This document shows, in pieces, positions 15,902 to 63,052 of a stretch of 64,000 bases of DNA. The stretch's first letter is position 1. Each line of letters opens with the position of its first letter. The translations under genes were made by a program, and so were the position numbers. The notes below the pieces were generated by a model. The model searched no databases and was not told where the DNA came from. It was given only the letters and a program-made list of their open reading frames with translations. This DNA is from Ranitomeya imitator (Eukaryota). Location: contig NC_091289.1 of assembly GCF_032444005.1 (NCBI RefSeq), forward strand, positions 13,392,001 through 13,456,000, in the 5' to 3' direction.

Positions 15902-18663
15902 GCAAAGGGGCTGAAGACTTATGACCATGGGAGATTTCAGATTTTCATTTTTAATAAATTGACAAAAATTTCTACATTTCTGTGTTTTTTTTTTTTTTTT
16001 TTTTTTTTTCCCCTCAGTCAAGATGGGGGAGCAGAGTGCACATTAATGAGAAGAAATGAACTTTTTTGAATTTACCAAATGGCTGCAATGAAACAGAGTG
16101 AAAAATGTGAAGGGGTCTGAATACTTTGTGTACCTGCTGTAAATCGAGCTGCCGCAGCGGGGAGCCTGCCGGTCCTTTCGGTCTCTCCCCGCAGGGTTCT
16201 CCTGCCCATGTGCTGCGGGTTTTCTCGCTGGATCATTCGGCCTCTTTGTTCACACGTGCGGTCCCCTCCCTTGTGACTCAAGCAGCTGATGAACCACATG
16301 ATCCTCCATACAATAATTAAGTCTGGTGCTGCAGCCGTCTGTGCGGTTAACCCATCGAGAGCCACTGCATGAGTCGTCACATCCTTGTATAAATATATGT
16401 ATTTATTTTCTATTTAAATTTATGGACCACATTTCCAAAATTTCTGCGCACGGTGCACAAAGTTTGCTATTAGGACTAGGATTTTCCTAGTGCCCCCCCC
16501 CCCCATCAGGGCTCATCAGAATACCTGCTCATTATATTATATGGCTACTCTTGCCCCTGGACATGCTCTTCCGTCCTGCTAATTGACCTGCATGGGGATC
16601 ATCTGGTGCATTGGAGAGCACTCCGGACCCTGGAAAGCCTAGTGTGCATGCAGACCCTCTTATAATAAGGCTGACTGGGGGATTCTGCTCCTGTAATGTA
16701 ACTACTGCAGCACCTCCTGTGGAGAAACATAGTATTACATGCTCCCATTAATATCCATGGCTGGGCCGCTCCCTCTGCAGCAGGAGACCTCTCCCTGGTT
16801 GAACGGTTGGAGTTGTTGGTTTCCACAAGGCTCAGCTGTATGTTTCTGGGGGGCCGCCCTGTGCGCCTCACCGACCCCAGAATGCACATTAGCGCTGCCG
16901 GACTTGTGCATGTGCAGTGAACTACAGCTGGTGCTTCCCTTACATGGGGCTGCCCGCTCACTGTTTGTCCGAGAGTCCATCACCAACACTGCCTCAGCCC
17001 CTTTATTCTTGCTATTGTTGGTGTCCTACAAGCCAAAGTCTAGATAAACCAACAGACATCAGCTTACAGTGCTATATCCTAGTCCTGATGAGGCTGGTGG
17101 ACTTGCTTTGAAAATCCCCATCCGAATGACTATCATCTGTGGGTGTCTGTTTATTTATTTTTTACATTTTCCCACTGTATACTAAAATTCTCATCCTAAT
17201 ATTGAGCTATTCTGCCGGAATTTTACAGTAACTGCACCTGCCTCATCAGGTCTAAGATTTATTTAATCATTCAGCTTTCATCTTGTGATCTGCTGACAGG
17301 ATCCTTTTACAGAGATCCTGACTAATTGGCCAAGGCTTGTTCTGCTGCCAAGCTGGCACCGCTGAGGATGGTCTAGCAACCTGTTGTCACACTACAGCTC
17401 CCAGCATGCCCTGTCACATGTGGGGGTCTTTATGTGGTGCTCTGAGACCCCCGGAGCACAAGCATATCATTAACACAAAACTGAAAATAAAGATTAAAAG
17501 CTACGAGACGGATTTCATCACCGGTTATCGGTGTAATCAGTATAACTGCTCCGACCTGACACTGTCTGTAGGTTACTGGGCACAATCCTGCTGACAGGTT
17601 CCCTTTAAAGGGCAGCACCGGGTTTGTCTGTCTGTACATAAGGTGAAGCCCTGCTGATAAGTGCCCCCTCTGCTGTAATATCCCATGCGGGGGGATCACT
17701 TTATACACTGATGCTTGTGATGTGCACGCTCTGTATGGATGAGCGTGCATGTGTGGAGAAAAGGGGTAACGGCCACACATTGCCTTAGACGTGTGCTTTT
17801 ATTCTGCATATGATGGGCTTTATTTCTCACATGAGCCTTTGATCGGCGCTGGTTCTGCTGCTCTTCTTCTAGGTTAGGGGCTTCTACTTTTCACCCGTGA
17901 TTAGTGCTGTGTGTGTGGAGGGGGCTGGCTGATTTCATTACTTATGCCATCTGCAACTATACTGTAACAAAGGGGGCTGGCTTGGCTATTGAAATCAGCA
18001 GTCAGCCCCCGAAGCACACTGCCCCAGGCACGATCAAGCCTTTTCCTGTATTGAACCCAAACTCCAACTGAAGCTTTGGGCCACATTGGTTAAAAGGCCG
18101 CAGTCAGCAAGTGACTCATATTATTGCTCTGCTGCCCCCGCCCCTTTAAGCTTAATTGACACAAGTGGAAGCCCCCTTTAACTCTTGCAGGGTTCTGCTG
18201 TCCATAGATATAAATAGACCTCGGGGATCTGCATTCCTGGAGGGAGATTGATGAGCAAGTAAATAATGGAGGAAGTGATTCTGGTGACGCAGCGGCTCCT
18301 GGGCCCTGACTGTGTACCATGGCGGGGGATGGGCCAGACCCTTCCTTTATCAAACCGGAGCGCTACGTCCAGCACGTCGCCATCACTGGCAGCAGAATCG
18401 CACAGTACTGACGTATCGTGGTGACAGGCGCCAACCTCATGGCGAGGAATTCCTGCCCCTCTATAGACTGGGATGAGCAGCTCCTCAGTGGGGCTTGTAG
18501 GAGGCCGCCTGACACTGGGCACTCGTGATCTGTGGCCGATAAAACTGCTAATATGCCGTACAATGGAGGCAGCAGTGATCATCCGCAGCGGGCGGCCACG
18601 GCTGAGTATAACCAGGTCTGTGCAACACTATATAGTGATGGTCAATACTGAGGACACTGGGTA

Positions 18664-20228
18664 AGAATGGTGAGCGCAGCTCTGGGGTATAATACAGGAT
18701 GTAACTCAGGATCAGTAATGTATGTACACAGTGACTGCACCAGCAGAATAGTGAGTGCAGCTCTGGAGTATAATACAGGATGTAACTCCGGATCAGTAAT
18801 GTATGTACACAGTGACTGCACCAGCAGAATAGTGAGTGCAGCTCTGGAGTATAATACAGGATGTAACTCAGGATCAGTAATGTAATGTATGTACATAGTG
18901 ACTGCACCAGCAGAATAGTGAGTGCAGCTCTGGAGTATAATACAGGATGTAACTCAGGATCAGTAATGTAATGTATGTGCACAGTGACTGCACCAGCAGA
19001 ATAGTGAGTGCAGCTCTGGGGTATAATACAGGATGTAACTCAGGATCAGTAATGTAATGTATGTACACAGTGACTGCACCAGCAGAATAGTGAGTGCAGC
19101 TCTGGGGTATAATACAGGATGTAACTCAGGATCAGTAATGTAATGTATGTACATAGTGACTGCACCAGCAGAATAGTGAGTGCAGCTCTGGAGTATAATA
19201 CAGGATGTAACTCAGGATCAGTAATGTAATGTATGTACATAGTGACTGCACCAGCAGAATAGTGAGTGCAGCTCTGGAGTATAATACAGGATGTAACTCA
19301 GGATCAGTAATGTAATGTATGTGCACAGTGACTGCACCAGCAGAATAGTGAGTGCAGCTCTGGGGTATAATACAGGATGTAACTCAGGATCAGTAATGTA
19401 ATGTAATGTATGTACACAGTGACTGCACCAGCAGAATAGTGAGTGCAGCTCTGGGGTATAATACAGGATGTAACTCAGGATCAGTAATGTAATGTATGTA
19501 CACAGTGACTGCTCCAGCAGAATAGTGAGTGCAGCTCTGGGGTATAATACAGGATGTAACTCAGGATCAGTAATGTAATGTATGTGCACAGTGACCGCAC
19601 CAGCAGAATAGTGAGTGCAGCTCTGGGGTATAATGCAGGATGTAACTCAGGATCAGTAATGTAATGTATGTACACAGTGACTGCTCCAGCAGAATAGTGA
19701 GTGCAGCTCTGGGGTATACTACAGGATGTAACTCAGGATCAGTAATGTAATGTATGTACACAGTGACTGCACCAGCAGAATAGTGAGTGCAGCTCTGGGG
19801 TATAATACAGGAGGTAACTCAGGATCAGTAATGTAATGTATGTGCACAGTGACTGCACCAGCAGAATAGTGAGTGCAGCTCTGGGGTATAATGCAGGATG
19901 TAACTCAGGATCAGTAATGTAATGTATGTACACAGTGACTGCTCCAGCAGAATAGTGAGTGCAGCTCTGGGGTATACTACAGGATGTAACTCAGGATCAG
20001 TAATGTAATGTATGTACACAGTGACTGCACCAGCAGAATAGTGAGTGCAGCTCTGGGGTATAATACAGGAGGTAACTCAGGATCAGTAATGTAATGTATG
20101 TGCACAGTGACTGCACCAGCAGAATAGTGAGTGCAGCTCTGGAGTATAATACAGGATGTAACTCCGGATCAGTAATGTAATGTATGTACACAGTGACTGC
20201 ACCAGCAGAATAGAGTGCAGCTCTGGGG
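18664..20228. repeat. 86-bp satellite, about 18 copies
   Basis: Unit CAGAATAGTGAGTGCAGCTCTGGAGTATAATACAGGATGTAACTCAGGATCAGTAATGTAATGTATGTACACAGTGACTGCACCAG. ORF starts recur every 86 nt. Confidence 0.97.
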
Positions 20229-21583
20229 GATAATATCTTCTGTATATCCCTCTACATTCGGTTTCTTCAGTTTCCTGTATCTGACGTAGACGTTTGTTGC
20301 CTTTTCCCCGTATTTCTGGCTGTATTCGGTGACTCAGCCGCACGTGCGGTGACGCGGTTGGACAGGACATGATCCGCTTTCTCACATTCCTCCCACTACT
20401 TATGGTCAGGTGTGTATTCGGCTCTGCTGCATCGTCCGCTTGTATAACCTGCAGCCATTACTGTGACGTCGGCCTCCTGGTATTTCTGCCGCCTCTCTGG
20501 CTTTTCACTCCATTACTCATGTAAATCTCTGTTTTGCGAGTGACGCTTACGTTATTTCCACTCGTCCTCACAGCTGACGGCTCGGATCGGTGTACAGATC
20601 TTCTTCTTCGCCCTCCTGTGCCTGACTGAGGTTTGTTCTGCTGCTTTACTCGTCGTGCAGGGGATTGCCAAGTCAGGGGGTCAGCAAGCTGTGAAACTAC
20701 AACTCCCAGGATGCCCTGAAGGCCTTAGTAGAAGTTTTCTTGAAACCTTTCCAGGACTTCTATGAAGTGTAGAGCTGGAGCTGAGCGTGTGGTTAGAAGG
20801 TTGCCCTGACCCTGCTGCAGATGGTCGGGTGGTCCCGTGGGTTGGGGGTCTCGGTTCATCATTGGTTGGCAGATCTCCGTCAGTACCTGTGGGACTTGTC
20901 TCTAACTTACAGGCGTCACATTACTCGTCATCAGGTCCTTAGTCCCAGTTCCTCGAGCGCTCGTGGTATTGACCCCACGTCATCTTATGTCCAGGAGGAG
21001 GGTGGGGGTTGTTTACTCGGCCGGAGTCCTATTCCTCCCTCCATGCTGACAAGGACGCAATCTCCATTTATAAAACCTGCCGACGGTGCAGAATAATGGT
21101 GCAACCTTCCTCCTCTTGTATTGTTGCAATCCAGGGTCCAAATGGTGGTGGTCTGTGCGATGGTGGTGGTCTGTGCGATGCCAGGCTCTGCCTGTGAACA
21201 GGAGAGGCGCTGTTCACCAGTGTAGGCCTCGGTTTATGGCAGTGTATCGACCCCCTGAACAGAGGCGCCGGTGTGTGCAGCCATCAAGTAAATGGCCGAT
21301 AACAGGGAACAATAGATTATAATGACCTAGACACAATATTTGGAGACCTGAATGACAAGAAAATGGTGCATTCATTCCAAACGTCCTATAGATGTCCACA
21401 GCGATGGTGTCAGTGACCCCATGGTGCGTCCGGGGGTATGGTATCGGTGGCAGCTGTGGGGGTCGGCCGGGCATCAAACATTGTGGAAACTCCTTTTTAT
21501 GCATTTTGTGACTAATTTTCAGCGGGTCTCGTTCCCCCTCGGTAATCGCTTTTCCTTCTCTTCACAGATTATTTTCTTGAAAG

Positions 21584-24469
<2,886 letters not shown>

Positions 24470-31274: not shown

Positions 31275-31633
31275 AAACTGTGTTAGTTCCGAGAAATTAA
31301 ACCCTTTAATTTAAATGTCCCAATTTAACGACCCCCCCGTGATGGGATCCGGCGGCATCTGTGGGGGGTTCTCTCTACACCCCTGGTTTTAATCATAATA
31401 AAAACATTGGGGAGACTGAGAAATAGAGGGGTAAAGTACAGCCCCCTAACCCTGGCTGAGCCACTGACATAGGGAGCACCTTTTATTTTCTGCCTAGTGG
31501 TGATTTCTGGGGGGATTCTGCAGGGGGGTCGTGGTGGGTTGCAACAAGAAGCGTCCGGACTGCAGGAATTGGGGGTCATCGGCAGTGGGGGGGTGTCGGA
31601 TGAGGGGATACAGGGCGGCAAAGGTGACGGAAG

Positions 31634-31704
31634 AAACACAAGTTCCTGCAGAGACAGGCTGAGGCTGTTGTTGTTCTCAACGTGGTCCGCTCTGTCAGTA
31701 CAAG
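31634..31704 (+). promoter_or_regulatory. H1-10: H1-type promoter of H1-10 copy 1 (AC box, H4 site II-like box, degenerate TATA)
   Basis: AAACACA 31634-31640, TCAACGTGGTCC 31677-31688, TACAAG 31699-31704. Spacing matches the copy 2 promoter. Confidence 0.7.
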
Positions 31705-31740: not shown

Positions 31741-32520
31741 CGATCCACACAAAGCAGAGCGATCTGCAGAGCATCCACAGAGCAGAGCCATCTGCAGAGC
31801 AATCCACAGAGCAGAGCCATCTGCAGAGCAATCCACAGAGCAGAGCCATCTGCAGAGCAATCCACAGAGCAGAGCCATCTGCAGAGCAGAGCCATCTGCA
31901 GAGCATCCACAGAGCAGAGCCATCTGCAGAGCATCCACAGAGCAGAGCCATCTGCAGAGCATCCACAGAGCAGAGCCATCTGCAGAGCATCCACAGAGCA
32001 GAGCCATCTGCAGAGCATCCACAGAGCAGAGCCATCTGCAGAGCATCCACAGAGCAGAGCCATCTGCAGAGCATCCACAGAGCAGAGCCATCTGCAGAGC
32101 ATCCACAGAGCAGAGCCATCTGCAGAGCAATCCACAGAGCAGAGCCATCTGCAGAGCATCCACAGAGCAGAGCCATCTGCAGAGCATCCACAGAGCAGAG
32201 CCATCTGCAGAGCAATCCACAGAGCAGAGCCATCTGCAGAGCACCCACAGAGCAGAGCCATCTGCAGAGCATCCACAGAGCAGAGCCATCTGCAGAGCAT
32301 CCACAGAGCAGAGCGATCTGCAGAGCAATCCACACAGAGCAGAGCCATCTGCAGAGCATCCACAGAGCAGAGCATTCACAGAGCAGAGCCATCTGCAGAG
32401 CATTCACAGAGCAGAGCCATCTGCAGAGCAATCCACAGAGCAGAGAATCTGCAGAGCAATCCACAGAGCAGAGCCATCTGCAGAGCATCCACAGAGCAGA
32501 GCCATCTGCAGAGCACCCAG
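31741..32520. repeat. 28-bp minisatellite (AGAGCATCCACAGAGCAGAGCCATCTGC), about 28 copies, between promoter and ATG of H1-10
   Basis: 28-nt period, e.g. 31921 and 31949. Confidence 0.95.
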
Positions 32521-32550
32521 TGAGCAGCAGCGCAATTTGCAGAGCAGGAG

Positions 32551-33159
32551 ATGGCGCTGGAGCTGGAGGAGAACGTGCCCACCACTGAGGAGGAGGATGA
32601 GGGCGATGATGGGGAGGATGAGACCCCCGCAGGGAAGAGAAGCTCCAGGAGGAAGAAGGCGGCTGCAGCCTCATCGGGGGCCTCTAAGAAGAAGGGAAAG
32701 AAGAAGAACCAGCCCGGCAGGTACAGCCAACTGGTGGTGGACACCATCCGCAAACTGGGCGAGAGGAACGGCTCCTCCCTGGCCAAGATCTACGGCGAGG
32801 CCAAGAACGTGTCCTGGTTCGACCAGCAGAACGGCCGCACCTACCTGAAGTACTCGGTGAAGGCGCTGGTGCAGAACGACACCCTGCTGCAGGTGAAGGG
32901 GGTCGGGGCCAACGGCTCCTTCCGCCTCAACAAGAAGAAGCTGGAGGGCGGGGGGACCCCGGAGAGGAAGGCGGCCCCCAAACCGGCGGCGGCGGCCAGG
33001 AGGACTACAAGTGCCAGCAGCAGCGCCGCGAAGAAGAGCCACAAGAAAGCCAAGAAGGAGAAGCCCAAGAAGAGCAGCAAGAAGAAGGCGGCGGCGGCGG
33101 CGAGTGCGGGGGGCAGGAAGGTGAAGAAGACGGCGAAGCCCAAATCCAGGAAGGCGTGA
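32551..33159 (+). CDS. H1-10: Linker histone H1.10 (H1x), 202 aa, intronless
   Basis: MALELEEN start, diagnostic [32 protein letters not shown]...[33 protein letters not shown] globular domain, SHKK and GGRKVKK..KP C-tail. Good Kozak context; in-frame TGA 30 nt upstream fixes the start. Confidence 0.97.
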
Positions 33160-33439
33160 GGGGGGGGGGGGCGACCGCCGACCGGACCGCTCGTGTTCGT
33201 GCAATGATGTGATCGTGTCCCCCCGAGAGGCGGAGCCCGGACACGGCGGCCCAAGGCCGGACACAACAGCCCGGACACAATGTATCCACTCATTCTGCTC
33301 GGAACTTTCACACAATCGGCGCCACTTGATTGGCCCGAGAGAAGCTGTCACCCTAGCGACGGCGTTCCATGGGCGTGGCCTCGGTGACAGCTGTGAAGTG
33401 GCAGGAGGAGGCGCAGGACAGTGAGGCCTCTCGGGGGTT

Positions 33440-34270
33440 CTTCTCCTTCTCTTCTCCTCCGCTTTCTTCCTCTACTCCTCTGCTTTCTCCTCTTTCCTCT
33501 TCTACTCTTTCTTCATCTCCTTCTCTTCCTCTTCTCCTTTTTTCCTCCTTTCTTCATCTCCTCCTCCTTCTGTCCTTTCCTCTCCTCCTTTTCCTCTTTA
33601 CTCTTCTTCCTCTTCTCCATCTCCTCTTCTTATCTCCTCCTTCTCTTCCCCATCTTTTTCCTCTTCTCCTTTTCTTATTCTTCATCTCCTCCTCCTTCTA
33701 TCTTCTTTCCTCTCCTCCTTCTATTTACTCTTCCCCTCCTCCACTTTCTTCCTCTTCCTCCTCTGCTTTTTCGTCTTCTTATTCTTCATCTCCTCCTTCT
33801 GTCCTTTCCTCTCCTCCTTTTCCTCTTTACTCTTCTTCCTCTTCTCCATCTCCTCTTTCCTCCTTCTTCTCTTCCCCATCTTTTTCCTCTTCTCCTTTTC
33901 TTATTCTTCATCTCCTCCTCCTTCTATCTTCTTTCCTCTCCTCCTTCTATTTACTCTTCCCCTCCTCCACTTTCTTCCTCTTCCTCCTCTGGTTTTTCGT
34001 CTTCTTATTCTTCATCTCCTCCTTCTGTCCTTTCCTCTCCTCCTTTTCCTCTTTACTCTTCTTCCTCTTCTCCATCTCCTCTTTCCTCCTTCTTCTCTTC
34101 CCCATCCTTTTCCTCTTCTCCTTTTCTTATTCTTCATCTCCTCCTCCTTCTATCTTCTTTCCTCTTCTCTTTTTTCTCTCATACTTTCTTGTTATTCTTC
34201 ATCTCCTTCTCCCCTTTCCTATCCTCCTCCTATTTACTCTCCTCCTTCTCCTCTTTACACTTCTTTCGCT
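33440..34270. repeat. Polypyrimidine low-complexity tract with a 226-bp higher-order repeat
   Basis: Almost only C/T. The TTATTCTTCATCTCCTCCTCCTTCTATC block recurs at 33675, 33901 and 34127. Confidence 0.9.
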
Positions 34271-34378
34271 CCTCGGGACCTTTCATTCCTTTTGTAGATT
34301 TTCTGTTGCTCTTTATTTTGCACTTTATAATTTTATCTTTTATGTATTTTATGTTCGGTTATTTTTTATGCTGAATTA

Positions 34379-36724: not shown

Positions 36725-38330
36725 CAGTGGGGCAAAAAAGTATTTAGTCAGTCAGCAATAGTGCAAGTTCCACCACTTAAAAAGATGAGAGGCGTCTGTA
36801 ATTTACATCATAGGTAGACCTCAACTATGGGAGACAAACTGAGAAAAAAAAATCCAGAAAATCACATTGTCTGTTTTTTTAACATTTTATTTGCATATTA
36901 TGGTGGAAAATAAGTATTTGGTCAGAAACAAACAATCAAGATTTCTGGCTCTCACAGACCTGTAACTTCTTCTTTAAGAGTCTCCTCTTTCCTCCACTCA
37001 TTACCTGTAGTAATATCACCTGTTTAAACTTGTTATCAGTATAAAAAGACACCTGTGCACACCCTCAAACAGTCTGACTCCAAACTCCACTATGGTGAAG
37101 ACCAAAGAGCTGTCAAAGGACACCAGAAACAAAATTGTAGCCCTGCACCAGGCTGGGAAGACTGAATCTGCAATAGCCAACCAGCTTGGAGTGAAGAAAT
37201 CAACAGTGGGAGCAATAATTAGAAAATGGAAGACATACAAGACCACTGATAATCTCCCTCGATCTGGGGCTCCACGCAAAATCCCACCCCGTGGGGTCAG
37301 AATGATCACAAGAACGGTGAGCAAAAATCCCAGAACCACGCGGGGGGAACTTGTGAATGAACTGCAGAGAGCTGGGACCAATGTAACAAGGCCTACCATA
37401 AGTAACACACTACGCCACCATGGACTCAGATCCTGCAGTGCCAGACGTGTCCCACTGCTTAAGCCAGTACATGTCCGAGCCCGTCTGAAGTTTGCTAGAG
37501 AGCATTTGGATGATCCGGAGGAGTTTTGGGAGAATGTCCTATGGTCTGATGAAACCAAACTGGAACTGTTTGGTAGAAACACAACTTGTCGTGTTTGGAG
37601 GAAAAAGAATACTGAGTTGCATCCATCAAACACCATACCTACTATAAAGCATGGTGGTGGAAACATCATGCTTTGGGGCTGTTTCTCTGCAAAGGGGCCA
37701 GGACGACTGATCCGGGTACATGAAAGAATGAATGGGGCCATGTATCGTGAGATTTTGAGTGCAAACCTCCTTCCATCAGCAAGGGCATTGAAGATGAAAC
37801 GTGGCTGGGTCTTTCAACATGACAATGATCCAAAGCACACCCCCAGGGCAACGAAGGAGTGGCTTCGTAAGAAGCATTTCAAGGTCCTGGAGTGGCCTAG
37901 CCAGTCTCCAGATCTCAACCCTATAGAAAACCTTTGGAGGGAGTTGAAAGTCCGTGTTGCCAAGCGAAAAGCCAAAAACATCACTGCTCTAGAGGAGATC
38001 TGCATGGAGGAATGGGCCAACATACCAACAACAGTGTGTGGCAACCTTGTGAAGACTTACAGAAAACGTTTGACCTCTGTCATTGCCAACAAAGGATATA
38101 TTACAAAGTATTGAGATGAAATTTTGTTTCTGACCAAATACTTATTTTCCACCATAATATGCAAATAAAATGTTAAAAAAACAGACAATGTGATTTTCTG
38201 GATTTTTTTTTCTCAGTTTGTCTCCCATAGTTGAGGTCTACCTATGATGTAAATTACAGACGCCTCTCATCTTTTTAAGTGGTGGAACTTGCACTATTGC
38301 TGACTGACTAAATACTTTTTTGCCCCACTG
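36725..38330 (+). mobile_element. Intact 1606-bp Tc1 element (copy A)
   Basis: TA-CAGTGGGGCAAAAAAG...CTTTTTTGCCCCACTG-TA, about 205-bp TIRs, complete ORF. Confidence 0.98.
37092..38114 (+). CDS. Tc1 transposase, 340 aa, DD34E
   Basis: Paired-like HTH N-terminus, LWSDETK, FQHDND and PDLNPIE motifs; 34 residues between the second D and E; no stops. Confidence 0.96.
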
Positions 38331-38835
38331 TATATACCGGGACGGGAGACATGTATACCGGGACGGGGGACATGTATACCGGGACGGGGGACATGTATAC
38401 CGGGATGGGAGACATGTATACCGGGATGGGGGACATGTATACCGGGATGGGGGACATGTATACCGGGATGGGGGACATGTATACCGGGATGGGGGACATG
38501 TATACCGGGATGGGAGACATATATACCGGGATGGGAGACATATATACCGGGATGGGGGACATATATACCGGGATGGGAGACATATATACCGGGATGGGAG
38601 ACATATATACCGGGATGGGGACATGTATACCGGGATGGGGGACATGTATACCGGGATGGGGGACATGTATACCGGGATGGGGGACATGTATACCGGGATG
38701 GGGGACATGTATACCGGGATGGGAGACATGTATACCGGGATGGGAGACATGTATACCGGGATCGGGGACATGTATACCGGGATGGGGGACATATATATCA
38801 GGAGGGGAGACATATATACCAGGATGGGAGACATA

Positions 38836-40439
38836 CAGTGGGGCAAAAAAGTATTTAGTCAGTCAGCAATAGTGCAAGTTCCACCACTTAAAAAGATGAG
38901 AGGCGTCTGTAATTTACATCATAGGTAGACCTCAACTATGGGAGACAAACTGAGAAAAAAAAATCCAGAAAATCACATTGTCTGTTTTTTTAACATTTTA
39001 TTTGCATATTATGGTGGAAAATAAGTATTTGGTCAGAAACAAAATTTCATCTCAATACTTTGTAATATATCCTTTGTTGGCAATGACAGAGGTCAAACGT
39101 TTTCTGTAAGTCTTCACAAGGTTGCCACACACTGTTGTTGGTATGTTGGCCCATTCCTCCATGCAGATCTCCTCTAGAGCAGTGATGTTTTTGGCTTTTC
39201 GCTTGGCAACACGGACTTTCAACTCCCTCCAAAGGTTTTCTATAGGGTTGAGATCTGGAGACTGGCTAGGCCACTCCAGGACCTTGAAATGCTTCTTACG
39301 AAGCCACTCCTTCGTTGCCCTGGCGGTGTGCTTTGGATCATTGTCATGTTGAAAGACCCAGCCACGTTTCATCTTCAATGTCCTTGCTGATGGAAGGAGG
39401 TTTGCACTCAAAATCTCACGATACATGGCCCCATTCATTCTTTCATGTACCCGGATCAGTCGTCCTGGCCCCTTTGCAGAGAATCAGCCCCAAAGCATGA
39501 TGTTTCCACCACCATGCTTTACAGTAGGTATGGTGTTTGATGGATGCAACTCAGTATTCTTTTTCCTCCAAACACAAGTTGTGTTTCTACCAAACAGTTC
39601 CAGTTTGGTTTCATCAGACCATAGGACATTCTCCCAAAACTCCTCTGGATCATCCAAATGCTCTCTAGCAAACTTCAGACGGGCCCGGACATGTACTGGC
39701 TTAAGCAGTGGGACACGTCTGGCACTGCAGGATCTGAGTCCATGGTGGCGTAGTGTGTTACTTATGGTAGGCCTTGTTACATTGGTCCCAGCTCTCTGCA
39801 GTTCATTCACTAGGTCCCCCCGCGTGGTTCTGGGATTTTTGCTCACCGTTCTTGTGATCATTCTGACCCCACGGGGTGGGATTTTGCGTGGAGCCCCAGA
39901 TCGAGGGAGATTATCAGTGGTCTTGTATGTCTTCCATTTTCTAATTATTGCTCCCACTGTTGATTTCTTCACTCCAAGCTGGTTGGCTATTGCAGATTCA
40001 GTCTTCCCAGCCTGGTGCAGGGCTACAATTTTGTTTCTGGTGTCCTTTGACAGCTCTTTTATCTTCACCATAGTGGAGTTTGGAGTCAGACTGTTTGAGG
40101 GTGTGCACAGGTGTCTTTTTATACTGATAACAAGTTTAAACAGGTGCCATTACTACAGGTAATGAGTGGAGGAAAAAGGAGACTCTTTAAGAAGAAGTTA
40201 CATGTCTGTGAGAGAAAGAAATCTTGATTGTTTGTTTCTGACCAAATACTTATTTTCCACCATAATATGCAAATAAAATGTTAAAAAAACAGACAATGTG
40301 ATTTTCTGGATTTTTTTTTTCTCAGTTTGTCTCCCATAGTTGAGGTCTACCTATGATGTAAATTACAGACGCCTCTCATCTTTTTAAGTGGTGGAACTTG
40401 CACTATTGCTGACTGACTAAATACTTTTTTGCCCCACTG
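38836..40439 (-). mobile_element. 1604-bp Tc1 element (copy B), same family, inverted relative to copy A
   Basis: Same TIRs, TA flanks, transposase on the minus strand. Confidence 0.98.
39052..40071 (-). pseudogene. Tc1 transposase with a nonsense mutation
   Basis: TGT>TGA at 39484-39486 (LWGC>LWG*), a 3-bp in-frame deletion (TCRV>TCV), and several substitutions relative to copy A. The downstream frame is unchanged. Confidence 0.93.
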
Positions 40440-50212: not shown

Positions 50213-51082
50213 TAATATATATATATATATATGTAACTTGTAATAGAAAATGCATTTTGCAGCAGGTAGCTCCGCTCAGTCACCTGTCATTATCACAGAT
50301 GTAGCAGAGGTGAGTTTGGCATTTGTTTCATCTCATAGTGATTCTAGAACATATTATCTGTGGTTTTACATAGGACTGCAGGTAAATCTGCTACATTATA
50401 TCAGTAAGTTACTGTCGTGTCCAAAACAAACTAATAAACGACAAATTCATACAAGAACAATTTGCACATCTCAGGATTTTACATAGGACTGCAAGAAATC
50501 TACACTGAAAGCCTTAGTGACTATACACAGCGATGGGTGACACACTCGGCTCTGCTACATCTGTGTTCCCAGCTCATTCCTGTAGTTTGGTAATTTCCCC
50601 CAGATCCTTCTCCCCAGACAGGGTGGGTGTGTGCCAGGACCCCCCACATATAAAGTGCCAGCATGTGATCGTCGGTGCCAAGTTCAGGACCCCCCTCCAG
50701 CTGCAGATCACGTGGGGGGCGCTCTGTGTTACTTGCACCAAATTACCCCCCCTCTATCTCCAGCCCGGCTGAGCGCAGACCCCCCGAATAAATCTCCATC
50801 TGTCCCCTGAAACCTCCTCTTCTTGTCCAGACTCTGACCCCTCCGGATCGCCCCCGGTAAATCCCCGTAAATCGCCCCCCAGTAGCATGCCTCCCCACCG
50901 CTAGGGCTCCGGCGGGCCGGGGATGCACTGATCAATCCGGGGATTTCAGGGTTAATAAAGCCGAAATCGGCGTCGGTTTCCGTGCAGGTCGGCAGAGGGG
51001 GGTCCTGGGTGCAGGATGCACCGGAGATCCCGGTCCTGGACGGTCCCGGTTTGCAGAAAATGGCGCAGAATTGAGCGGGAAG

Positions 51083-51154
51083 AAACACAAGTTGTGGGGA
51101 AGTGGCGCTGGGAGCTGTTGTTGTTCTCAACGTGGTCCGCTCCCTACGTATAAA
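51083..51154 (+). promoter_or_regulatory. H1-type promoter of H1-10 copy 2
   Basis: AAACACA 51083-51089, TCAACGTGGTCC 51127-51138, TATAAA 51149-51154, Inr-like TCAGT at 51180. Confidence 0.8.
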
Positions 51155-51216
51155 GGAGGCGGGGAAGGGGGGCCGGGGATCAGTGTGATCGGCAGCAGCG
51201 GAGAGATCGCAGAATA

Positions 51217-51768
51217 ATGGCGCAGCAAGAAGTCGCACCGGCAACCCCCAGCAAAAAAGCCAAAGCGGCAGCCGGGGGCAGCGCCAAGAAGTCCGGCGGC
51301 AAAAAGAAGAACCAGCCGGGCAGGTACAGCCAACTGGTGGTGGACACCATCCGCAAACTGGGCGAGAGGAACGGCTCCTCCCTGGCCAAGATCTACGGCG
51401 AGGCCAAGAACGTGTCCTGGTTCGACCAGCAGAACGGCCGCACCTACCTGAAGTACTCGGTGAAGGCGCTGGTGCAGAACGACACCCTGCTGCAGGTGAA
51501 GGGGGTCGGGGCCAACGGCTCCTTCCGCCTCAACAAGAAGAAGCTGGAGGTGCTGGCGGTGCCCCGGAGGAAGACCCCCAAACCGGCAGCGGCGGCCAAG
51601 AAGCCGGCGGCTGCCGCCAAGAAGCCGGCGGCTCCGAAGAAGAGCCCCAAGAAGGCGAAGCCGGCCCCCAAAAAGAGCAGCAAGAGCCCCAAAAAGGCGA
51701 CCGGCAGCCGGGCCGGCAAGGCGAAGAAGGCGAGCAAGCCCAAAGGGCTGAAGGCCAAGAAATCCTAG
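51217..51768 (+). CDS. H1.10-like linker histone paralogue, 183 aa, with basic tails resembling canonical H1
   Basis: Globular domain identical to H1-10 copy 1, N-tail [15 protein letters not shown]-tail with KPAAAAK repeats and two SPKK motifs. Intact ORF and promoter. Confidence 0.95.
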
Positions 51769-52069: not shown

Positions 52070-52075
52070 AATAAA
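52070..52075 (+). terminator. Candidate polyadenylation signal of H1-10 copy 2
   Basis: AATAAA about 300 nt after the stop, followed by TTTGTTTGTTTTTT. No stem-loop. Confidence 0.7.
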
Positions 52076-57167: not shown

Positions 57168-57535
57168 CAGAGCTGCACTCACTATTCTGCTGGTGCAGTC
57201 ACTGTGTACATACATTACATTACTGATCCTGAGTTACATCCTGTATTATACTCCAGAGCAGCACTCACTATTCTGCTGGTGCAGTCACTGTGTACATACA
57301 TTACTGATCCTGAGTTACATCCTGTATTATACTCCAGAGCTGCACTCACTATTCTGCTGGTGCAGTCACTGTGTACATACATTACATTACTGATCCTGAG
57401 TTACATCCTGTATTATACCCCAGAGCTGCACTCACTATTCTGCTGGTGCAGTCACTGTGTACATACATTACATTACTGATCCTGAGTTACATCCTGTATT
57501 ATACTCCAGAGCTGCACTCACTATTCTCTTGGTGC
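57168..57535 (-). repeat. 86-bp satellite in inverted orientation, about 4 copies
   Basis: Reverse complement of the 18664 unit. Confidence 0.95.
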
Positions 57536-57537
57536 AG

Positions 57538-57765
57538 AATGATGGCTCAGTGGTTAGCACTGCAACCTTGCAGTGCTGGGGTCCTGGGTTCAAATTCCTC
57601 CAAGGACTACAACAGCAAGGAGTTTGTATGTTCTCCCCGTGTTTGTGTGGGTTTCCTCACACAGTCAAAAGACATACTGGTAGGGAATATAGTGAAAATA
57701 TTTTATGTAAAACGCTGCGGAATAGGATAGAGCTATATAAGCAAAGTATAATAAATAAATAATGC
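57538..57765 (+). mobile_element. tRNA-derived SINE (V-SINE-like)
   Basis: A box TGGCTCAGTGG, B box GGTTCAAATTCC, core GTTTGTATGTTCTCCCCGTGTTTG, A-rich tail. Same family as 28232. Confidence 0.8.
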
Positions 57766-59198
57766 AGTAATGTATGTACACAGTGACTGCACCAGCAGAA
57801 TAGTGAGTGCAGCTCTGGAGTATAACACAGGATGTAACTCAGGATCAGTAATGTAATGTATGTACACAGTGACTGCACCAGCAGAATAGTGAGTGCAGCT
57901 CTGGGGTATAATACATGATGTAACTCAGGATCAGTAATGCAATGTATGTACACAGTGACTGCACCAGCAGAATAGTGAGTGCAGCTCTGGAGTATAATAC
58001 AGGATGTAACTCAGGATCAGTAATGTAATGTATGTACACAGTGACTGCACCAGCAGAATAGTGAGTGCAGCTCTGGGGTATAATACAGGATGTAACTCAG
58101 GATCAGTAATGTAATGTATGTACACAGTGACTGCACCAGAATAGTAAGTGCAGCTCTGGAGTATAATACAGGATGTAACTCAGGATCAGTAATGTAATGT
58201 ATGTACACAGTGACTGCACCAGCAGAATAGTGAGTGCAGCTCTGGAGTATAATACAGGATGTAACTCAGGATCAGTAATGTAATGTATGTACACAGTGAC
58301 TGCACCAGCAGAATAGTAAGTGCAGCTCTGGAGTATAATACAGGATGTAACTCAGGATCAGTAATGTAATGTATGTACACAGTGACTGCACCAGCAGAAT
58401 AGTGAGTGCAGCTCTGGAGTATAATACAGGATGTAACTAAGGATCAGTAATGTAATGTATGTACACAGTGACTGCACCAGCAGAATAGTGAGTGCAGCTC
58501 TGGGGTATAATACAGGATGTAACTCAGCATCAGTAATGTAATGTATGTACACAGTGACTGCACCAGCAGAATGGTGAGTGCAGCTCTGGAGTATAATACA
58601 GGATGTAACTCAGGATCAGTAATGTAATGTATGTACAGAGTGACTGCACCAGCAGGATAGTAAGTGCAGCTCTGGAGTATAATACAGGATGTAACTCAGG
58701 ATCAGTAATGTAATGTATGTACACAGTGAATGCACCAGCAGGATAGTAAGTGCAGCTCTGGAGTATAATAGAGGATGTAACTCAGGATCAGTAATGTAAT
58801 GTATGTACACAGTGACTGCACCAGCAGAATAGTGAGTGCAGCTCTGGAGTATAATACAGGATGTAACTCAGGATCAGTAATGTAATGTATGTACACAGTG
58901 ACTGCACCAGCAGAATAGTGAGTGCAGCTCTGGGGTATAATACAGGATGTAACTCAGCATCAGTAATGTAATGTATGTACACAGTGACTGCACCAGCAGA
59001 ATGGTGAGTGCAGCTCTGGAGTATAATACAGGATGTAACTCAGGATCAGTAATGTAATGTATGTACACAGTGACTGCACCAGCAGAATAGTGAGTGCAGC
59101 TCTGGAGTATAATACAGGATGTAACTCAGGATCAGTAATGTAATGTATGTACACAGTGACTGCACCAGCAGAGTAGTGAGTGCAGCTCTGCAGTATAA
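57766..59198 (+). repeat. 86-bp satellite, about 16.5 copies
   Basis: Same unit and orientation as 18664..20228. Confidence 0.97.

Positions 59199-62556: not shown

Positions 62557-63052
<496 letters not shown>

Follow-up and report, generated by a model that had tools for sequence, protein, structure and literature searches.

Probable recurrent gene conversion of the globular domain between two old tandem H1-10 linker histone genes in frogs

Two linker histone genes of Ranitomeya imitator, gene A and gene B, carry the same globular-domain core between widely different tails. We attribute this arrangement to recurrent interlocus gene conversion of the core between old tandem paralogues whose tails have diverged independently, and we give this reading a probability of about 0.9. 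The frog sequences compared in this work show a non-reciprocal homogenisation of about 250 bp between the two same-strand loci, which took place independently in at least five lineages. The window analysed is a stretch of 64,000 nucleotides, and all positions below refer to it. The two genes and the two copies of the tract are as follows.

32551..33159, plus strand: gene A, an intronless linker histone gene of H1-10 (H1X) type, 202 aa (open reading frame and Pfam)
51217..51768, plus strand: gene B, an intronless paralogue derived from H1-10, 183 aa (open reading frame and Pfam)
32701..32947, plus strand: probable conversion tract in gene A, with 232 nt exact at 32716-32947 and 247 nt with one mismatch at 32715
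51304..51550, plus strand: probable conversion tract in gene B, the partner of 32701-32947, exact at 51319-51550

Both open reading frames are intact, intronless and located on the plus strand with an offset of 18,603 nt. The Pfam family Linker_histone (PF00538) was matched by residues 57-127 of protein A (E 1.9e-15, 57.3 bits) and by residues 36-106 of protein B (E 9.2e-16, 58.3 bits), the cut-off being 22.4 in both cases. Both proteins exhibit the tripartite build of linker histones with a lysine-rich C-tail. The N-tail of protein A is of the acidic H1X type (49 aa with 13 D+E), and its C-tail is basic and rich in serine and alanine (25 K+R among 70 residues, two of the residues being acidic). 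Protein B consists of a short N-tail of 28 residues, the core, and a proline- and lysine-rich C-tail of 72 aa that contains 11 P, 27 K+R and no acidic residue. The alignment of frog proteins exhibits the same two types. A-type proteins have an acidic N-tail that starts with M-S/A-L-E-L-E-E and have LEGG after the core. B-type proteins have an N-tail that starts with MAQQEVAPA and have LEGLAVPK after the core.

The N-terminal and post-core motifs of gene A can be aligned with those of amniote H1-10. Gene A agrees with the H1-10 (H1X) group in its best matches and in both motifs, and gene B agrees with the group in its core and best match only, its tails being of a different, frog-specific type. 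In human, H1-10 is located beside RAB7A. Gene A is like the replication-independent vertebrate H1-10 (H1X) in its N-terminal M-S/A-L-E-L-E-E, its post-core LEGG, its core, its intronless structure and its position after a rab7a-like gene. The difference from vertebrate H1-10 is that pelobatoid and neobatrachian frogs have a second, tail-diverged copy B located 6-19 kb downstream. Judged by the motifs shared between A-type proteins and amniote H1-10 and by the rab7a-like and H2A neighbours, gene A is the H1-10 orthologue and gene B is an old tandem copy.

The 9-kb neighbourhoods of the two genes can be aligned only in the coding sequence and in a promoter piece of 65 nt. The whole coding sequences of A and B are 84% identical over 463 gapped columns. 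The N- and C-tails of A and B are homologous and widely diverged, with dS in R. imitator of 0.69-0.85 or saturated, these being rough values from low-complexity alignments. The core is different. Positions 32716-32947 are identical to positions 51319-51550 over 232 nt, and the maximal exact run has exactly these ends. The extension of this run to 32701 on the 5' side adds 14 matches and one mismatch at 32715, where the proline codon is CCC in A and CCG in B. The tract covers the winged-helix globular domain and about five codons on each side. Direct comparison confirmed what the earlier note had reported, namely 232 identical bases and 247 bases with one synonymous CCC/CCG difference, and the Pfam match in both open reading frames agrees with its placement of the tract over the winged-helix domain.

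The same note had drawn attention to identity at silent sites over about 77 codons and to shared CAA, AAA and TCG codons. Synonymous differences between A and B are indeed absent from the exact run (77 codons), and the three codons were found in both copies. When the core is extended to 83 codons, 2 of 58 silent sites differ, both at the 5' edge, and there is no replacement difference. The permutation of polymorphic sites, which was performed with our own script on the principle of Sawyer's test and not with GENECONV, gave P < 5e-5 for the run in R. imitator. The absence of differences at about 54 silent sites of the exact run bounds the age of the last event only loosely. The tract joins the tails in frame with homologous sequence replaced, and there are no target-site or junction scars.

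The sole mismatch of the 247-nt tract, position 32715, is polymorphic. It is C in gene A of the assembly, and it is G, which is the state of gene B, in the A contig of run X1 and in the related organism E.

Contigs of public runs were aligned to positions 32500-33420. The material consists of contigs only, none of which spans a whole gene. One contig of run X1 (451 nt) leads from the 5' region and N-tail of A into the core as far as 32937, and its sole difference from the assembly is the G at 32715. Contigs of runs X1 and X4 connect the final 30 bases of the core with the C-tail and 3'UTR of A. Further contigs of both runs leave the core into the C-tail of B, and the fork in run X4 lies exactly at 32947/32948. 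The core exhibits no bubble in the RNA-derived contigs. Private variants were found elsewhere in the contig runs, comprising 33147 C>T, the length of the G-run after the A stop, and a B allele that is one AAG shorter. Because of these private SNPs and indels, the contig runs represent molecules that are different from those of the assembly. Independent RNA-derived contigs reproduce the junctions, so A and B are both transcribed and the mosaic structure of each is real. An artefact of polishing or assembly, by which the earlier note had said its claim could fail, is contradicted by these contigs, which carry both mosaic genes. The contigs from DNA runs of R. imitator have holes over the core and are noisy on the GAG-rich N-tail of A.

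Several other features of these contigs were recorded. The run X1 contig that enters the C-tail of B forks at 32937 and continues directly with CTGGAG, so the B allele in that run seems to lack an AAG lysine codon (32938-32940 / 51541-51543), of which the 3' edge of the tract otherwise has three. Run X4 has the reference form at these three codons. The G-run at 33160-33172 after the stop of gene A differs among runs by one additional G, two additional G or a deletion of 8 nt. Organism E diverges from gene A by 4.5% over 222 nt (32503-32724), which comprise the end of the 5'UTR, the N-tail and the first bases of the core. Gene A is present in about 19 probably RNA-derived runs. The protein of gene A was absent from the matches of the protein search with protein A, and that of gene B was returned (P0009). 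Gene A may be unannotated in the R. imitator genome.

The search with protein A identified two kinds of protein named 'H1.10-like' in many frogs. DNA of both genes was compared in six species (R. imitator, Engystomops, Leptodactylus, Spea, Nanorana and Pyxicephalus), and single genes (A of Mantella and B of Dendropsophus) were added to the codon alignment. The A/B pair of Hyperolius, Rana temporaria and Dendrobates was compared at the protein level only. No A-type gene was found within 10 kb on either side of B in Dendropsophus, which entered the trees as a single B. Gene A followed by gene B is located downstream of a rab7a-like gene in Engystomops, Leptodactylus, Spea, Nanorana and Pyxicephalus. 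Gene B lies 6-19 kb downstream of A on the same strand. Genes of A type and B type are found in the same order in pelobatoid, ranoid and hyloid frogs. This distribution accords with the old duplication proposed by the earlier note. By gene order and type, the A/B duplication of H1-10 (H1X) is judged to be older than the split of pelobatoids and neobatrachians.

Four early-branching frogs, Ascaphus (P0030), Bombina (P0110), Discoglossus (P0024) and Rhinophrynus (P0022), have a single type among the matches listed. The proteins of Ascaphus, Discoglossus and Rhinophrynus have a B-like N-tail (QEVAPATP), and that of Bombina has a very short one. The ancestral H1-10 C-terminal end KPSVPK-V/L-PK is common to all four. 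Annotated N-terminal extensions were observed in proteins of Spea and Pyxicephalus (L003:10001-10198, L008:3366-3470, L008:10001-10180) and of Pelobates (P0008), and these look like upstream non-coding sequence that has been read through. The extensions of Spea A, Pelobates A and Pyxicephalus B correspond to translated promoter region, in which the H1-box-like motif reads KKHK. In Spea, Pelobates and Pyxicephalus, conserved start codons are located downstream of the annotated ones.

The core and the tails give different trees. The tree of the tails exhibits an A clade and a B clade, each with 100/99 support and each roughly tracking the species tree. The tree of the core exhibits A paired with B inside each species with 82-100% support. 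The AU test rejected a B clade for the core (p 3.8e-11, and 6e-5 with 14 rows that included more taxa) and rejected within-species pairs of A and B for the tails (p 9.7e-9 to 0.034). These are the groupings that the earlier note had predicted under conversion before any tree was built.

Synonymous divergence agrees with the trees. The dS between the A and B cores of the same species is 0.018 in Leptodactylus, 0.035 in R. imitator, 0.096 in Nanorana, 0.133 in Engystomops and 0.194 in Spea. The dS of the core between species ranges from 0.13 to 2.2 with medians near 0.5, and the dS between the A and B tails ranges from 0.55 to saturation across species, values that are rough because of low-complexity alignments. 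The regional contrast expected by the earlier note was thus observed in five species, with core dS of 0.018-0.194 against 0.55 to saturation in the tails and 0.13-2.2 between orthologues. The outcome that it had set against conversion, a domain tree grouped by orthologue with normal dS, was not found. The permutation P values in the five species were < 5e-5 in R. imitator and Leptodactylus and 5e-5, 1e-4 and 8e-4 in the others.

Pyxicephalus is the exception. Its A and B cores have dS of 0.96 (30 of 55.5 silent sites differ) with dN of 0.02. The silent sites of the core are thus free to change. As one of the six species is without homogenisation, conversion would be episodic rather than continuous. 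The claim of recurrent conversion is supported, as five species of three superfamilies each have their own silent and replacement states shared between the copies, with the qualification that the process is not universal.

The states shared between the copies are often private to a species. Many silent states are species-specific and common to both copies, for example an AGC serine in both genes of Nanorana. A and B share the core replacement of K to N in R. imitator only, and those of S to P and V to Q in Leptodactylus fuscus only. Gene A of Hyperolius has the K of ranoid B type and gene B of Rana temporaria has the V of ranoid A type, which suggests that exchange runs in both directions. In Spea and Pelobates the stretch shared by A and B continues into the C-tail for about 20 codons, so the ends of the tract are not fixed. 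Differences within the core are patchy in Engystomops, Spea and Nanorana, and these patterns point to partial conversion tracts. The core GC3 is 0.96-0.98 in R. imitator and 0.75-0.96 in other frogs, against a GC of 0.47 for the window. The lowest values (0.75 and 0.82) are those of Pyxicephalus, the sole species without recent conversion. The core GC3 fits GC-biased conversion, which is suggestive only, the substitutions being unpolarised.

The tails of A and B are not equally constrained. The dN/dS of the B tails is 0.14-0.34, which denotes purifying selection. That of the A tails is 0.19 in ranoids and 0.3-1.0 in hyloids. Because of the latter values, gene A may be less constrained in the hyloid lineage of R. 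imitator, though it is intact and expressed.

The elements that flank the two genes in the window, and the neighbours on both sides, are as follows.

21584..24469, plus strand: exons of a rab7a-like small GTPase gene, upstream of gene A (tblastx)
31629..31692, plus strand: promoter remnant of gene A with the H1-box-like AAACACAAG at 31634, 81.5% identical to the B promoter
31748..32546, plus strand: minisatellite of about 27 units of 28 nt with no ATG in any, between the promoter remnant and the ATG of gene A
33446..34258, plus strand: CT-rich low-complexity sequence downstream of the stop of gene A, at least partly 3'UTR
51078..51156, plus strand: promoter of gene B with the H1-box-like motif at 51083 and TATAAAGG at 51149-51156
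52070..52075, plus strand: AATAAA poly(A) signal of gene B
62557..62937, minus strand: H2A-type histone gene of 126 aa that starts with MSGRGK, downstream of gene B

The promoter piece shared by A and B (65 nt, 81.5% identity) contains the H1-box-like AAACACAAG. The distance from this motif to the ATG is 134 nt in gene B, where it is followed by TATAAAGG, and 917 nt in gene A, because the 28-nt minisatellite intervenes. In other frogs, the H1-box-like motif is located 120-190 nt upstream of the ATG of both A and B. The run X1 contig begins inside the minisatellite and the contig of organism E enters the same 28-nt unit. Since RNA contigs start within the repeat, the minisatellite is probably a long, repeat-filled 5'UTR of gene A. 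The first AATAAA after gene A is at 34375, and RNA contigs reach about 160-170 nt past 33420.

The rab7a-like exons have 87-100% amino acid identity per exon by tblastx to the gene that precedes A in Spea and Leptodactylus. A rab7a-like gene is found upstream of A in R. imitator, Leptodactylus, Spea and Nanorana. A minus-strand H2A gene of 126 aa is found downstream of B in R. imitator, Dendrobates and Pyxicephalus. Since its length and orientation agree with those of the H2A gene behind B in Dendrobates and Pyxicephalus, the gene at 62557-62937 is, by this synteny, considered part of a conserved small histone cluster.

The window also contains many repeats. An inverted repeat between A and B (36844-38333 / 38833-40319) has arms of about 1.49 kb with 98-99% complementarity and a centre of 499 nt. 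In tblastx the arms match intronic sequence in the rab7a-like gene of Leptodactylus, and for this reason the inverted repeat at 36844-40319 is probably a transposable element. Arrays of an 86-nt satellite are located at 18650-20330 and 57297-59150, about 37.6 kb apart, and the 241-nt block at 57297-57537 is inverted. Arrays of 20-, 21- and 35-nt units occupy much of 7.0-8.5, 35.3-38.6 and 42.7-50 kb.

Three explanations without repeated exchange were weighed and rejected. The identity could exist in the assembly only, if one copy had been corrected with the reads of the other. The shortness of the tract (232-247 nt), the abundance of satellites in the region and the holes over the core in DNA contigs of the same species would all suit such an error. 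However, RNA-derived contigs from two other studies exhibit the passages from the A N-tail into the core and from the core into both C-tails, with a bubble-free core and private variants elsewhere. Core-only homogenisation is also found in four other frog assemblies that were made independently, and the K-to-N replacement specific to R. imitator is present in both copies. We regard an artefact as extremely improbable. Hardly any credence can likewise be given to constraint on silent sites, in which codon bias or an RNA or DNA element within the coding sequence of the globular domain would have kept the copies alike with no exchange. The extreme GC3 of the core in R. imitator and other frogs against the window GC is in its favour. 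However, orthologous cores differ freely between species (dS 0.13-2.2), and in Pyxicephalus 30 of 55.5 silent sites are different between the two cores, replacements being almost absent. Constraint also cannot yield species-specific states common to both paralogues, nor a core tree that contradicts the tail tree. The remaining explanation, young duplications in each lineage or a one-off chimera made by non-homologous pasting of the core, is very unlikely. Young duplications would also give similar cores within species, but A and B are orthologous between superfamilies in their tails, promoters and gene order, with an A clade and a B clade each supported at 100/99, a conserved order of rab7a-like gene, A, B and H2A, and the H1-box-like motif before both genes. 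Homologous sequence is moreover replaced in frame, target-site or junction scars being absent, and Engystomops, Spea and Nanorana have patchy partial tracts.

A further explanation accepts conversion and adds selection to it. Homogenised cores would suit the same nucleosome surface or chaperones, and tracts that reach into the tails would be purged. Three observations are consistent with this idea: the ends of the tract differ little in codon position among four distant species, a few residues (R/K, L/V) remain specific to the paralogue in ranoids with shared silent states around them, and the B tails are under purifying selection. On the other hand, the core protein hardly varies in any case (dN 0.02 even in Pyxicephalus, which is without conversion), so homogenisation would bring little gain to the protein. 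The shared stretch of Spea and Pelobates enters the C-tail by about 20 codons, and the loss of homology would account for the ends of the tract with no need of selection. We consider it rather unlikely that selection maintains the conversion. The wider form of the idea, in which B is an unrecognised frog-wide H1 subtype and A and B form a long-lived system of two tails and one core with selected homogenisation, is a speculation that we hold to be similarly doubtful. If it were true, A and B would track the same binding surface while their tails (an acidic N-tail versus a C-tail of canonical-like proline- and lysine-rich type) would function separately, and frogs would be a natural tail-swap experiment on H1 tail function.

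The recurrent conversion that we prefer can be described as follows. A duplication of H1-10 would have produced A and B in tandem, and their N- and C-tails and flanks would have diverged independently since then. The core of about 250 bp would have been overwritten repeatedly by non-reciprocal homologous recombination between the two loci, and the last event in R. imitator would be recent enough to leave 232 identical bases. The tract probably stops at the indel-rich, low-complexity tails that encode lysine, alanine and proline, with AAG-rich codons at both ends, because heteroduplex could presumably not extend into sequence that cannot be aligned. Purifying selection on the core protein may keep the cores similar enough for conversion to be repeated, a state that would sustain itself. 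A long gap without an event would allow the silent sites to drift apart, as in Pyxicephalus. The net effect would be two expressed linker histones that have the same nucleosome-binding module and different tails. The suggestion in the earlier note that conversion would keep one DNA-binding core coupled to two tail sets is an adaptive hypothesis, and the passive explanation suffices, the core being the only stretch similar enough to recombine.

Interlocus (ectopic) gene conversion and the concerted evolution of tandem duplicates are known, and the classic case is the human fetal gamma-globin pair. The frog pair is similar to it in having same-strand paralogues a few kb apart with sharply bounded near-identity inside older diverged sequence, and in that the paralogues group by species within the tract and by orthology beyond it. 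Unlike the gamma-globin pair, the frog tract corresponds to one protein domain of an intronless histone gene and is flanked by coding tails of low complexity, not by introns or non-coding simple repeats. The frog case also recurs across superfamilies, the duplication being older than their split.

Recombination has been reported in the same protein family, where GARD breakpoints of mammalian H1.1-H1.5 are located at about both ends of the globular domain (PMC5400378). Those breakpoints came from alignments of orthologues and were taken to reflect how the tripartite structure arose, and the promotion of exchange by low-complexity tails of H1 genes was discussed (PMC5400378). The view that H1 genes evolve by birth and death and not by concerted evolution was restated in the same work (PMC5400378). 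The findings in this work are similar in that the breakpoints flank the globular domain. However, the exchange in frogs involves two named paralogues, can be demonstrated to be recent and is identified by identity at silent sites. Public annotation names B 'H1.10-like', and neither the frog H1-10 pair nor conversion in H1-10 was found described in the literature searched. The mechanism is known, and the case is new and clean in a family that is usually said to be without concerted evolution.

The A/B pair is a clear counter-example, with proof from silent sites, to the view that linker histones evolve by birth and death only (PMC5400378). The pattern is repeated in five frog species of three superfamilies, and Pyxicephalus serves as a built-in negative control. 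Trees of H1 that are based on the globular domain would mis-date the A/B duplication as several young, lineage-specific events. Gene A is transcribed yet missing from the protein set that was searched. Many frogs have two expressed genes derived from H1-10 with the same globular domain and very different tails, and the A/B pair is a natural experiment that separates the functions of the H1 tails from those of the core.
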